Source: Pavona decussata (Eukaryota). Taken from it: a stretch of DNA of 64,000 nucleotides. Position numbers and translations under genes: made by a program. The notes beneath the pieces are model-generated. The model was not told the DNA's origin. It saw only the letters and a program-made list of their open reading frames with translations, and searched no databases. Positions 21,241 through 57,704 of the stretch are shown piece after piece (the stretch's first letter is position 1; each line of letters begins with the position of its first letter). The stretch lies in assembly GCA_977016875.1 (NCBI GenBank), contig CDRNST010000144.1:372001-436000 (forward strand), given 5' to 3'.

Positions 21241-21256
21241 GGCTCCTAAAGGAGCC
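21241..21256 (-). promoter_or_regulatory. Histone-mRNA-like 3' stem-loop
   Basis: Minus strand ACAAC-GGCTCC-TTTA-GGAGCC-ACCAAAT: 6 bp stem, 4 nt U-rich loop, ACCA 3' flank, 32 nt after a stop codon. The top base pair is C-G instead of the canonical U-A. Confidence 0.65.
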
Positions 21257-21288
21257 GTTGTGAGAGATCATTTTGTAATGACTCTCTT

Positions 21289-21718
21289 TTACTTCGGTAA
21301 CCCACTCAGGTACAGAAATTTGTTGTAGTCTACATCATAGTAGAACCACAGATGGCTTTTCTGCTCGCCATTGTTGAGGACAAAATCGACTTGTCTTGCC
21401 CTCTTTTCTACTTTAACTGTTGATTCCGCCCAGTGCTACGCCAGCATTATCCATCTTCTGATAAGGCTTGGCTCACAACCGTTACTGATGAGAAAGAGAA
21501 CCACCTTGAAGGTTTAGGTATCACCCATGCATAGGTTTTTTCCAGAATATGAGCCGCATTTCCTTTGGCCCCGATTTTAATGGAGAGAATGCGTCCCAGT
21601 CAATTACTCTGGTCAACTGCCTTCTTTCCTCTACTACTGCTGCTCGTGACAGTAAACGAGTTTCTTTCATATCCTGAAGACACCTTACAGAAACCTCTGA
21701 ATTTCCATTCTTTTTCAT
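21289..21718 (-). pseudogene. Small intronless gene, copy 1 (uncharacterised; possibly primase large-subunit CTD/PriX-like)
   Basis: RLLSRAAVVEERRQLTRVIDWDAFSPLKSGPKEMRLIFWKKPM/GDT*TFKVVLFLISNGCEPSLIRRWIMLA*HWAESTVKVEKRARQVDFVLNNGEQKSHLWFYYDVDYNKFLYLSGLPK*. Clearly homologous to 55553-55822. The family label is inference. Confidence 0.75.
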
Positions 21719-21739
21719 TTTTCTTTCCTTTTATTTAAT

Positions 21740-22146
21740 AAGCAAAGGACTCGCGTTGCCTGGTTGTCAATAATAAGTTGTTACAGTTGACATCAAACAC
21801 CTCCTATGTCTTAAAATGATTTCTAATTTCATCTCACCTTTCTATCGGTCAAGTTCAATTCCTTCCCCACATCGAAAACAGGGAGAGCTTCAGTTTTCAC
21901 TTGTGACCAAACGCGCAACAACAAAACATAATTTCAATCCTCCAAAATGGCAATTCGACTAAACCGTCTTGTTCTGGACCTGCAGACTTGCTACAAGTAC
22001 GATTTAGACTGGTCCCGGTTATCAGTAAAGCTCCGTGAGGTATGTTCTGAACTTTAATTTTCTTTTTTGCTTTTCGTAAGCTGTCTTGTTGAAGCAATAT
22101 CTTTCGTTGTTTCTGAGGTAAACAATAAATCGGTGAAAGCGGGCAT
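21740..22146 (-). pseudogene. Decayed intronless ORF with an OB-fold (SSB/RPA-like) pattern
   Basis: From ATG 22146: MPAFTDLLF...KSYL*QVCRSRTRRFSRIAILED*NYVLLLRVWSQVKTEALPVFDVGKELNLTDRKVR, resembling the 'L.D.....L..W.........G..I.L...V' OB strands. Several stops. Confidence 0.45.
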
Positions 22147-22233
22147 TATGTTATAACTTTAGCTTGGCTCGTGCTTGGTTGTCATGGCCTTGGTTTTGAT
22201 TTTCGTAACACGATATGTATGTTATTTCGACAG

Positions 22234-22393
22234 ATATGTCAACTTTTCGGAAAAGAAATGAAGGAGCGAGAAACAACTGTCCTCCTTGGGTTCCTTATGA
22301 TAATTTCCTTTTCCTTGGGGCACGCCAGTCTTTCCCTGAACAACTTTTAGACAGAACCGATCATCACGTGGATGGCCATCGTGCTTCCAACAG
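22234..22393 (+). pseudogene. Isolated exon of a DUF3987/YfjI-like ATPase gene, copy 1
   Basis: cag|ICQLFGKEMKERETTVLLGFLMIISFSLGHASLSLNNF*TEPIITWMAIVLPTG|gtaag. Nearly the same length (160 vs 161 nt), the same splice phases and the same sequence pattern as exon 56141-56301. Confidence 0.8.
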
Positions 22394-22869
22394 GTAAGGC
22401 TTCTTTAAATACTTGTCGCAGGCTCTTGTCACCATTTAAGAAACTAGTTTCCTTTAAAGATTGCACCTGGTTCTCGGTCAGTGGGGACAAACCCAAAAAT
22501 GGGTGAGCAACTGAGATAAACAGGGAAGGTTTCGTACAAAATTCAGTTCCTCGAGTTCCCGGGCTCAAGTTAGAAGTTACATTTTTTTCGACCCAGGTGT
22601 ATGCACACATGCATGACTTACTCCAGCACCCATCAATGCAGAACCTAGGTAAGACATTACTGAACTCTTTAATTAAGCCATTTGCCAATAATAAAATATT
22701 CATATTTAATACAATCTATCAGTAAATTACCTAATCAAGTATTTAGCTTTGTAAAAACCGAAATACAGTTTATCTTCAAAATTTTAATTTACACTTCTGA
22801 CAGGCAAATATGTCAATGTTTCCCAGTCTGTAATTATATAACTAAATAAGTTATTCGCTTTCATTGCAG

Positions 22870-54985: not shown

Positions 54986-55135
54986 TTAAAATTCATAACT
55001 GGTTTGTCAATGATCGGTAAGGGTACAAATTCAAGTTGTTAAAACAGCGGCTTTCGCTGTGGGGTATCATTATTTTTTATCAGCCAGTATTTCTATTCTT
55101 TGGATACCTGAGATTGGTATGAAATGCAAATCGTG

Positions 55136-55264
55136 AATAGACCCTTCTCACTCGGCGGCCATGTTGAGTCTCAGGAGAATAAAAAGCTTTGTTTTTTGCA
55201 AGGCAACCCTCGCACTGAATTCGCCTGTGATTCAACATGGTTGCGAGTGAGTGCAAAGGTTGCA
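55136..55264. mobile_element. Short MITE-like hairpin element
   Basis: Imperfect inverted arms cactc..gc..ccatgttga.tc.cagg.gaat / attc.cctg.ga.tcaacatgg..gc.gagtg. Confidence 0.6.
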
Positions 55265-55552
55265 GGAGCATGGGTACAGCAATTGATCTGTGCACATTCA
55301 TGAAGTTGTCATCAACGAGACCATCAACGATTGTTTGTATCAGCCATACTTGTTGATACCATTTCGCTTTGCAAAAATGTTGCTTTTCAAAATGATTACC
55401 TACGCTTATTTTGATTGAATTTTGTATTTCACACTGTAGGGTTTTTTTTAACGTTAGTAGTTTTGCTGCTATCGTTAAAAAAGTTTGTTTCTGGAAGCAG
55501 GAAGATTCGTCCGTAAATGGCATGGAGTCTTTTATCGCCATGTGCAAAAATA

Positions 55553-55822
55553 TCAGTTTCTTAGACCCGGAATTAATGTCTGCGATGACCAAACAAGCAG
55601 CTGTGGTGCACAACCGTTCCCAAAGCCAAATAACACCAGTTTAAATGTATCCTTGTCGCCAATAGGTTTGGCCAAAAATATCCTCTGGTATTCTTGTGGC
55701 CAAGCTTTTAAAGTAAAAAATGCATCACCGTTGATGGTTTCAAACAAGTTCCTTCCTTCCGTCATAACTTCGTGTTTGCTAAGCAAACGGAACTTCCTAC
55801 AATACTCATTCAAAGTTGCCAT
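55553..55822 (-). pseudogene. Small intronless gene, copy 2 (homologue of 21289-21718), probably frameshifted in its 3' half
   Basis: MATLNEYCRKFRLLSKHEVMTEGRNLFETINGDAFFTLKAWPQEYQRIFLAKPIGDKDTFKLVLFGFGNGCAPQLL. Confidence 0.75.
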
Positions 55823-55947
55823 TTCAATGGATACCTCACGAGCGTGTGCATGATTGTTGTCTTATAACGTTTCATTGTTTAAAAAATCGCATGTTCTTTG
55901 TTTTATCATATCAATGCCACAGTACAGTTCTTGCTGGGTCACTCAAC

Positions 55948-57347
55948 ATGGCTTCTAATCATCTCCATCATCTAGATAAAAATCTGAGCCATTGCCATAA
56001 ACGCGATATTGATTGGGACGTTCTACCTCACTCTATATGGCAGGTTAGTTGGAAATAAATTTTCACATAAATGTTTTTTTTTTTTTTTTTTTCACAAATA
56101 GTAATACATTGCTTACGAATTCCATGTATCATTCTTCTAGGCAAGCAAACTCTTGGGAAAAGGAATGAAGCAACGAGACACTTCAATCCTCTTTGGAGAC
56201 CTTATCCCCGTGGCATTTAGCATGGGACATGCCTGTATGAAATGTTCATGCCTTCTGGACGAAACCGGTGATTCTGTGGGTGGCCTGTGTCATAACTACA
56301 GGTATTTACACATTTTATCTATCAAAAAGAACTACTAACCCTCACAAAACGCCTCAAAACAATTGTCAAAAAATATTTTAACCTACGATTTTTCAAACTT
56401 CTTCCAGTTCACAAACCATACCTGCTAAAAGAAGACAACATAAATATACACTTAGGTACCCAACTACCCAACATCTTTATTTACAACCATCTTTTGCATT
56501 ATTGTTTGAAGGGCGTTGTAAATCTATGTCCCACAAACACCTCGTCGAAATCCTAGAGCTGGTGGCAGACCGTGTGATTGTTTGTGATGTCTCACCAAAG
56601 TCTATGATTCTATCCCATTGCACATGGGATAAATTTGGTGAGATTCTAGCTGATGGGGGAGGAAGATCGCTTGGCTTGTTTGATGAGTAAATGTCATTTG
56701 TAACTACAATGAACATGTACTCATCAAACAAGATGCAAGTCTCAGATACACGGGAGTATCAGGATTTTCTACAACCGTTTACAGGAAAAGTCTACAACAA
56801 GAGAGTCAGGTAAAACCACATCCTTAAGTTTATGGTGATTATTGTAATATTGAACACAATTTAATGTTGCATTCCAATTTTATACTCCCCCTTTTTCTTT
56901 TCAATGCATCTTAAGAGTTCTGCCACTAAAATCTACCATCAATTTATTGTTTACAAAATATCACATAGATTTTAGGAATAAAGAAAGTAATAATAAGAAT
57001 AAAAAAGGAAAAAGACAGGAACAAAATGAGAAGAACAAGAAAAATATAAATTATAGCCTGCAGAGCAGGCATATTTTTAGTGGGCAAGCGTTAAAGGCTA
57101 GGATACAGGAAACAAATACTCTATGCCGCCATCTTGGATGATAAAGCTGACAGAGGGTTGGGGCAAGCCCAAAAAGGATTCCGAGGAAGAGATTTAACAA
57201 AGAAGAGGGGAAGGGGAAATGCCCCTCACCCGCCCCTCCTCTACTAGTCCCAATTCTCTACAAGCTGTGCATTTAAAATAGCGGCCTCTTAACAAGCGTT
57301 CAAATAAATGAGTGTTCCTACACCAAAATGCCTGCTCCGCCATATAA

Positions 57348-57406
<59 letters not shown>

Positions 57407-57704
57407 TCCCTCAACAAATGAAAAATATACATGTTATTATTTACGACCTGAATTAATTGTGCTATTTTCCAATCAACAGTCACCAGCAATGCAAATTTCA
57501 ATATGCAAAGAACCTCATCTAACTTTGTGGGCTTTACACAACCATACACAGCATTCTCAGTGACAGAGGATGCTTCAAACAATGCCAAGGGATTTTCTTC
57601 CCGTATTCTGTGGTATTTTCTAAAACCAGTATTTGCCACCCTCAGAGAACCCATTTTAGCTCCAGACGAATGCGAAATCGGGACCACATTTAAAGAGAAA
57701 TTGG
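55948..57704 (+). pseudogene. Four exons of a DUF3987/YfjI-like P-loop (AAA+/helicase-like) ATPase, copy 2
   Basis: Exons 55948-56043, 56141-56301, 56512-56809 and 57480-57704 with GT-AG introns. Walker A split by an intron (TTG|RCKS), TWDKFGEILA..GGRSLGLFDE* (Walker B), FVGFTQP and KGFSSRILW (sensor and Arg-finger-like). One stop and two frameshifts. Confidence 0.8.
57348..57405 (+). repeat. (ATT)n microsatellite inside an intron of the ATPase gene
   Basis: Perfect ATT run. Confidence 0.98.

Follow-up and report, generated by a model that had tools for sequence, protein, structure and literature searches.

The 64,000-nucleotide stretch of Pavona decussata DNA analysed here (assembly GCA_977016875.1, contig CDRNST010000144.1, positions 372,001 to 436,000; hereafter the window) contains two loci, at 21.3-22.4 kb (copy 1) and at 55.5-57.7 kb (copy 2), where a small minus-strand gene, which we call S, stands head-to-head with the first exons of a spliced plus-strand gene encoding a DUF3987 ATPase. 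We conclude that both loci are very probably decayed insertions of two related families of cut-and-paste transposons of the KDZ superfamily (Zisupton/Dileera-like), in which DUF3987 and S are accessory genes. The class assignment follows from the KDZ transposase, the inverted repeats and the 8-bp target-site duplications (TSDs) of relatives of these loci, and from the end motif which both window copies share with them. The likeness to Zisupton and Dileera in particular is suggested by the 8-bp TSD and the transposase domain.

Two gene pairs and the elements that contain them

A sequence-only reading of this DNA had described two divergent small-gene/DUF3987 pairs, similar in protein and diverged in DNA, with plus-strand exons aligned in identical splice phase, and this description holds. 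Within the window, tblastn aligns S of copy 1 (21524-21730, minus strand) with S of copy 2 (55661-55798, minus strand) at 43% over 46 amino acids (E 1e-7), with a second matching piece in a shifted frame, and with a profile built from 60 members of the S family, copy 2 is matched at E 1.8e-33 and the two pieces of copy 1 at E 2.5e-19 and 3.6e-15. Exon 2 of the DUF3987 gene can be aligned between the two copies and terminates in both with ...ACAG/GTA in phase 1; the intron position that follows it is also present in Exaiptasia. An upstream coding exon bearing the ATG, which the earlier reading had missed, is common to both copies. At the DNA level, blastn finds no similarity between copy 1 and copy 2. 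Copy 1 is 86-91% identical to the related loci L010-L013 over 21001-21937; for copy 2, the identity to L001-L003 and L005 is 74-81%. Because their nearest DNA relatives differ, we assign the two copies to two different families. Both are pseudogenes.

The relatives show where such elements begin and end. In hexacorals, GAGGGT marks one end, and CAGTCA, CACACA or CAAGTA the opposite one, each being followed by an inverted repeat (TGTCCAATACT...), and 8-bp TSDs lie outside; the ends are thus made of 5-6 asymmetric bases and then the inverted repeat. Inverted-repeat termini were seen in L001, L002, L006, L007, L010, L011 and L013. The two flanking 8-mers agree at all 8 positions in L001 (GCGTCATT), L011 (TCCCACAA), the Exaiptasia locus L006 (AGCTGATT) and the locus L007 of the nemertean Tubulanus (GTTTATTG), and at 7 of 8 in L002. 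The earlier proposal that the unit is mobile DNA is therefore borne out, and these defined ends and 8-bp TSDs show that the elements integrate by way of a transposase, with 8-bp staggered cuts. In both window copies a CAGTCA-type end lies about 1 kb past the 3' end of S, pointing inwards. That of copy 1 matches the ends of L010-L013 exactly in its first 15 nucleotides, is the same as the copy 2 end in 18 of its first 19, and lies 1.08 kb from the 3' end of S (1.16 kb in L011). At the copy 2 end, similarity to L001, L002 and L005 breaks off sharply. As a separate observation, L010 and L013, which are on different contigs of one assembly, have swapped 8-bp flanks (GTTTCCTG...CTTGTCCC versus CTTGTCCC...GTTTCCTG), the signature expected of ectopic recombination between two element copies.

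Two relatives are complete. The Exaiptasia element (L006) is 19,646 bp long and contains a CxC5+KDZ transposase gene head-to-head with S, followed by DUF3987; the transposase gene product matches KDZ (PF18758) and CxC5 (E 1.1e-6). This is the one NCBI-annotated locus of S, and the gene is absent from its annotation. The Tubulanus element (L007) is 10,086 bp long, carries DUF3987 and a convergent CxC5+KDZ gene (KDZ E 1.4e-11, CxC5 E 1.2e-11), and has ends made of 5 asymmetric bases plus a 21-bp perfect inverted repeat. A second Tubulanus copy, on a different chromosome, is 95.8% identical across 8.7 kb. Neither complete element encodes a primase, a polymerase, an HUH Rep or another Rep gene, which also sets both apart from Polinton/Maverick and Helitron/Replitron elements with their own polymerase or HUH Rep. 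Thus, where the earlier reading had suggested a test for a linked integrase or archaeo-eukaryotic primase (AEP) polymerase, an integrase was found in the form of the KDZ transposase while a polymerase was not, and its view that the unit fits no eukaryotic transposable element class is contradicted by that transposase together with the terminal inverted repeats (TIRs) and TSDs.

The other relatives are shorter. L001, L002, L010, L011 and L013 are 4.5-8.9-kb deletion derivatives with an intact S. In L002, S and DUF3987 exons 1-2 lie inside a 4.8-kb unit bounded by TIRs and TSDs; L011 and L013 share the region adjacent to S, and in L011 the first KDZ exon lies there. The linkage of S and DUF3987 that had been proposed from the window is found again in L002, L004, L005 and Exaiptasia L006. 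Next to the S-carrying element of L005 stand a large Helitron (296-7641, minus strand; Helitron_like_N, PIF1 and endonuclease domain) and an open reading frame (ORF) with an OTU domain. The Helitron is a neighbour and not part of the element: similarity to the other copies stops just before it.

The elements of Cryptococcus described as KDZ are 9-11 kb long, have TIRs, 8-bp TSDs and extra genes without assigned function, and are experimentally mobile (PMC11343200). Zisupton and Dileera have TSDs of 8 bp and Kyakuja of 7 bp, and fungal KDZ elements bear cargo enzymes (PMC12730594). The animal elements resemble Cryptococcus KDZ1-3 and the fungal TET/JBP-carrying Dileera/Zisupton elements in their KDZ transposase with an N-terminal CxC cluster, a size of 10-20 kb, TIRs, 8-bp TSDs and extra genes. 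They differ from them in their cargo, which is a spliced DUF3987 ATPase and a small helical protein, and from other KDZ elements in the 5-6 asymmetric bases that precede the repeat. Our literature searches, which did not extend to Repbase, found no link of DUF3987 to a eukaryotic transposon and no paper on DUF3987 and S as cargo of a KDZ element, so that this combination is apparently undescribed.

The DUF3987 ATPase and the small protein S

Taken singly, the window exons have no Pfam or PHROG match, and the DUF3987 gene was for this reason identified through its full-length relatives. A search with exon 4 of copy 2 against 1.84 billion representatives gave 110 relatives, full-length ones being found in Exaiptasia, Oculina, Clytia, Tubulanus and Branchiostoma, all annotated as "uncharacterized". 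A later profile search, in which 8000 candidates were scored, yielded few new proteins and added relatives from Acropora and Paramuricea. The full-length proteins match PF13148 (DUF3987) with E values of 1e-15 to 1e-29, in agreement with the earlier naming of the gene, and map in order onto the window exons; the animal proteins match only model positions ~120-360. Intron positions are common to the window and Exaiptasia. Searches of the DUF3987 profile against PDB sequences and of the DUF3987 proteins against NCBIfam gave nothing useful. In alignment A8, G54, K57 and S58 (Walker A, G..KS) and D111 and E112 (Walker B, DE) are invariant, along with several other columns. The hexacoral proteins read TG[RG]CKS (56512-56530 in the window), the residue preceding the Walker A lysine being Cys and not the usual Gly; G-K-S is retained in Tubulanus, Clytia and Branchiostoma.

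The literature describes DUF3987 as a family of SF6 helicases found in phages and mobile elements (PMC4889955), and one bacterial PriCT-DUF3987 protein is a 5'-3' helicase (PMC11724360). The animal proteins have in common with the prokaryotic and phage DUF3987 helicases, such as the PriCT-DUF3987 protein AgaPH, the PF13148 core, the Walker A and B motifs and carriage by mobile elements. In contrast to them, they lack a PriCT domain and a primase partner, are encoded with introns, and have a DDE-type transposase as their partner. Individual loci deserve mention. The Oculina gene (L014, 10001-16739) lies antisense within an intron of an M24 peptidase gene, and the Clytia gene (L009, 10001-27231) has a piggyBac-like transposase gene within one intron; these two could be domesticated or solo copies. 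Three intron-less DUF3987 proteins of ~540 amino acids (P0062, P0144, P0145) come from JGI contigs of 1.7-3.3 kb, which may be metatranscriptome transcripts or derive from an intron-less lineage.

S belongs to a family of ~134-amino-acid proteins, with 32 matches to a single sequence and 235 to the profile. Its members are all unnamed and derive from ENA, Logan or JGI assemblies, none having an NCBI source in the search tables. S is under purifying selection (ratio of nonsynonymous to synonymous substitution rates, dN/dS, 0.09-0.28), and one assembly contains at least three loci encoding the same S protein. An AlphaFold2 model from 20 close sequences was poor (predicted local distance difference test, pLDDT, 55.7) and was discarded in favour of one from a 60-sequence alignment (pLDDT 93.5; predicted template-modelling score, pTM, 0.86), which shows six helices and a C-terminal beta-hairpin. 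The possibility that S is a split-off piece of the DUF3987 ATPase was rejected (hhalign probability 0.6%). Pfam, PHROG and NCBIfam searches gave no Myb or other DNA-binding domain.

The earlier reading had seen in S the fold of the primase large-subunit C-terminal domain (PriL-CTD) or of PriX. Like these, the S model is small and mostly helical, but Foldseek finds no PDB match with E below 1 (best E 1.8), and human PriL-CTD (5f0q_B) appears at rank 24 with E 4.6 and a template-modelling (TM) score of 0.27. C71 is the only Cys among the invariant and near-invariant columns of the 60 sequences; S therefore has no possible 4Fe-4S site, and no primase is linked to it. Judged by its model, S is not a member of the PriL-CTD/PriX family. 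Nor was the OB-fold, single-stranded-DNA-binding (SSB) ORF proposed, without coordinates, for copy 1 supported: the copy has no extra conserved ORF, and the only extra coding signal there (21292-21435) corresponds to the frameshifted C-terminus of S, its most likely identity, which in the model consists of a helix and the two-strand beta-hairpin. Structural matches of S lie elsewhere. Among the predicted viral structures of BFVD, Foldseek pairs its fold with uncharacterised proteins of CRESS-DNA viruses, among them A0A345MSD6, A0A345MYU2, A0A345N0P5 and A0A8A4XAY6, at probability 1.0, TM 0.55-0.62, E 8e-5 to 1e-2 and 16-22% identity. The predicted fold of S thus resembles these proteins by structure only; IMG/VR holds no relative of S by sequence.

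Anatomy of the two copies and of the window

Copy 1 is an internally deleted derivative made of an element end, S, DUF3987 exons 1-2 and the C-terminal exons of the KDZ transposase (Table 1). It would be derivable by a single internal deletion from an ancestor ordered end, S (minus), DUF3987 (plus), KDZ (plus), as we reconstruct that order. Its S lacks a start codon and contains one frameshift near 21528 and two in-frame stops, and the S region is 88% identical in DNA to L010-L013. Equivalents of the N-terminus encoded by DUF3987 exon 1 are present in P0146, P0099, P0149 and P0153; exons past exon 2 were not found in copy 1. The two KDZ exons match an Exaiptasia gene whose product matches PF18758 (61% over 70 and 55% over 53 amino acids). 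The repeat unit of copy 1 occurs in the window solely at 20.25-20.99 kb, in direct orientation, and at 24.03-24.17 kb, inverted, and the units are probable subterminal repeats; tails of short or long interspersed elements (SINEs, LINEs) were dropped as their identity, the units being confined to the surroundings of copy 1. A different repeat begins at ~24169, just past the inverted units, and the right end was not located there.

Just outside the copy 1 end, an ORF at 19545-20066 (minus strand) encodes a CxC5 cysteine cluster (E 8.9e-10), a domain that KDZ transposases have at their N-terminus. This ORF was rejected as part of copy 1: it lies beyond the end at 20203 and has no match to the L006 and L007 transposases, and for these two reasons is probably a fragment of another KDZ element. 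A 151-amino-acid ORF at 5817-6272 (plus strand), which has no Pfam match, shows 31% over 65 amino acids to the KDZ C-terminal exon at 22850-23086 and is a possible third KDZ-like fragment.

What remains of copy 2 is the portion of a longer copy nearest to S; mutations and an inserted LTR (long terminal repeat) retrotransposon have disrupted it, and it runs off the window. Its DUF3987 gene extends past 57704, where the earlier reading had ended it, and resumes on the far side of the insertion; the remainder of the gene was not found up to the window end. The inserted Bel-Pao element is 4.5 kb long, with 188-bp LTRs that are 92.6% identical and Pfam matches to DUF1759 (gag), Peptidase_A17 (protease), Integrase_H2C2 and DUF5641. 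It has no reverse transcriptase ORF and is thus internally deleted.

Table 1 Features of the two element copies in the window (positions are those of the window)
Feature	Positions	Strand	Evidence or remark
Copy 1 element end, CAGTCA + TGTCCAATAT..., inward to S	20203-20219	+	First 15 nt equal to the CAGTCA-type end of L010-L013
Copy 1 direct repeat units, families D1-D6, candidate subterminal repeats	20252-20985		Repeat search of the window
Copy 1 S pseudogene, residues ~12-132	21286-21667	-	tblastn with P0007, P0015, P0002
Copy 1 DUF3987 exon 1 (ATG ... /GT)	21947-22039	+	62% over 34 aa to L004
Copy 1 DUF3987 exon 2, TAG at 22348-22350	22234-22393	+	tblastn with P0063, E 8e-19
Copy 1 KDZ transposase C-terminal exons (22877-23086, 23370-23528)	22877-23528	+	Similarity to Exaiptasia KDZ gene
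Copy 1 left-hand repeat units, inverted	24032-24166		Inverted pairs I1, I2, I4, I7, I8
Copy 2 element end, CAGTCA + TGTACAATACT..., with ~290-bp subterminal repeat block	54314-54606	+	70-73% DNA identity to blocks of L001, L002, L005
Copy 2 S, N-terminal ~76-88 residues intact, C-terminal ~45 residues lost	55562-55822	-	tblastn; profile E 1.8e-33
Copy 2 DUF3987 exon 1	55948-56043	+	61% over 33 aa to L005
Copy 2 DUF3987 exon 2, 1-bp frameshift near 56236	56141-56301	+	Alignment with copy 1 exon 2; tblastn
Copy 2 DUF3987 exon 3, Walker A ..GRCKS, Walker B ..FDE, in-frame TAA at 56688-56690	56512-56809	+	tblastn with P0048, E 1.8e-30, 55%
Copy 2 DUF3987 exon 4	57480-57704	+	tblastn; query that found the full-length relatives
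Bel-Pao LTR retrotransposon in DUF3987 intron 4, foreign to the element	57900-62404	+	LTRs 57900-58087 and 62221-62404; Pfam
Copy 2 further DUF3987 exon fragments, residues ~230-314, in-frame stop and frame change	62715-62946	+	tblastn with P0048, P0063, P0072

The sole run of Ns in the window (52628-52788) sits between the two copies, 28 kb from copy 1 and 1.5 kb outside the end of copy 2. Its surroundings are AT-rich, no real ORF spans it, and no gene or exon of either copy crosses it. The spacing and order of the two copies across this run hold only as assembled.

Other features of the window lie between the copies. A 378-amino-acid ORF (38051-39187, plus strand) has an acidic N-terminus and an ...HKNARLGPAP... 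stretch; it may resemble Crypton/DUF3504-type tyrosine-recombinase-like proteins in this stretch, and it has no Pfam match at E below 0.01. Two tandem arrays with a 260-bp period (44192-44687 and 46805-47311) are present, and matching pieces ~3 kb apart in 42.5-47.3 kb (42635-42679 and 45645-45689, for example) suggest a local segmental duplication. AT skew is strong across 34-40 kb and 44-52 kb.

Possible roles of the accessory genes

Several observations have to be set against the assignment of these loci to KDZ transposons with DUF3987 and S as accessory genes. Firstly, the window itself is incomplete: each copy has only one end (20203 and 54314), second ends having been looked for in the window and not found, and consequently no TSD can be read there. 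The copy 1 end is recognised by its exact 15-nucleotide match and its position alone, the KDZ pieces of the window have by themselves no Pfam match, and the CxC5 ORF is external to copy 1. Secondly, the association of the three genes is not uniform. The order and orientation of the genes vary between lineages: the head-to-head neighbour of S is DUF3987 in the window, L002 and L005, and KDZ in L006, L011 and L013. S was not found in the Tubulanus element by profile search, the fetched loci included no scleractinian copy in which all three genes are intact, and neither S nor KDZ lies within 10 kb of the intact DUF3987 genes in Oculina (L014) and Clytia (L009). Lastly, the hexacoral proteins have the Cys before the Walker A lysine, and ATPase activity is a prediction from sequence, a bacterial member of the family being the only one with demonstrated activity (PMC11724360).

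In our reading, anthozoan elements carry three genes, the KDZ transposase, the spliced DUF3987 P-loop ATPase and the ~134-amino-acid helical protein S, with S presumably read from a shared divergent promoter region, its partner there being DUF3987 in some families and the transposase in others. DUF3987 and S may well be accessory factors of transposition rather than a self-replication kit, a judgement that we regard as evenly balanced. In the version that we prefer, the ATPase would engage DNA alongside the transposase, serving either as an ATP-dependent partner comparable to MuB, TnsC or IstB, or as a helicase during excision or repair. Mu (MuA/MuB), Tn7 (TnsB/TnsC) and IS21 (IstA/IstB) each combine a DDE transposase and a P-loop/AAA+-type ATPase in one element. 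The animal elements are like them in having a transposase beside an ATPase, which would be a functional analogy only, DUF3987 being nearer to replicative helicases. Similarly, En/Spm uses TnpA and TnpD, and PIF/Harbinger uses a transposase and a Myb-like protein. The animal elements have in common with these the multiple subterminal repeats and a small second protein, S differing in that it has no detectable Myb or DNA-binding domain. By this analogy S could perhaps be an adaptor or end-binding protein like En/Spm TnpA or the Harbinger Myb-like protein, a tentative suggestion.

The two genes might instead be cargo that acts against the host or outside the chemistry of transposition, for example in anti-silencing as for fungal TET/JBP, and is dispensable for movement. 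KDZ elements do capture unrelated enzymes (PMC12730594), gene order is fluid among lineages, and the short copies without DUF3987 (L010-L013) retain clean TSDs. Such copies could, however, be mobilised in trans, and Cnidaria and Nemertea, two distant phyla, have one ATPase family tied to KDZ, a linkage which argues for a long-standing functional partnership. We consider host-directed cargo somewhat unlikely.

The sequence-only reading had favoured a self-replicating element, in which a primase-large-subunit-like cofactor, a DUF3987 replicative helicase and an OB-fold SSB would form a replication kit. Phage and plasmid DUF3987 helicases indeed act with primases (PMC4889955, PMC11724360), and S has a weak, non-significant Foldseek match to an archaeal-virus PriL (rank 19, E 2.1, TM 0.39). 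But S lacks any significant match in the PDB, the two copies share no conserved OB-fold ORF, and the complete Exaiptasia and Tubulanus elements encode no primase, polymerase or Rep, which makes self-replication highly unlikely. TIRs, 8-bp TSDs and the KDZ transposase point to cut-and-paste movement instead.

It is likewise highly unlikely that DUF3987 and S are host genes, whether ordinary or domesticated, lying in transposon-rich DNA. The intact DUF3987 genes of Oculina and Clytia, annotated as single loci with no KDZ or S nearby, would fit such a view, but both window copies are pseudogenes and come from two families, TIR/TSD-bounded units (L002, L006) enclose S and the 5' exons of DUF3987, and both the identical S proteins at several loci and the near-identical pair of Tubulanus copies speak against it. 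Least probable of all is an origin of the unit from an integrated virus, for instance a CRESS-DNA-like one, as the match of the S fold to CRESS-DNA-virus proteins is silent on the direction of transfer, the elements have no Rep or capsid gene, S has no relative by sequence in IMG/VR, and the genes have conserved spliceosomal introns.

If KDZ transposons with accessory DUF3987 and S are taken one step further, animal KDZ elements might be obligate multi-protein machines in which a DDE-type transposase works with DUF3987 as a phage-derived ring ATPase/helicase and, in anthozoans, also with S. We think this unlikely as matters stand. Were it true, these elements would be the first eukaryotic counterpart of the transposase-plus-ATPase systems of Mu, Tn7 and IS21, or a case of helicase-assisted copy-out transposition; S would have a fold otherwise seen only in CRESS-DNA-virus proteins, and gene flow among single-stranded DNA viruses, phage-like replicons and eukaryotic transposons would be indicated.

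Few eukaryotic DNA transposons are as poorly understood as KDZ elements: their mobility has been shown only recently and their extra genes are unexplained. The presence of a helicase-family ATPase together with a KDZ transposase in TIR/TSD-bounded elements of cnidarians and a nemertean makes this ATPase a candidate accessory factor. A second candidate is S, an unannotated protein with hundreds of family members, which is under purifying selection and travels with these elements in anthozoans. Many of the DUF3987 genes that carry the label "uncharacterized protein LOC..." in coral, anemone, hydrozoan, nemertean and amphioxus genomes probably belong to transposons. Together, these elements provide a further case of replication-type genes of prokaryotes and viruses being taken up by eukaryotic mobile DNA.

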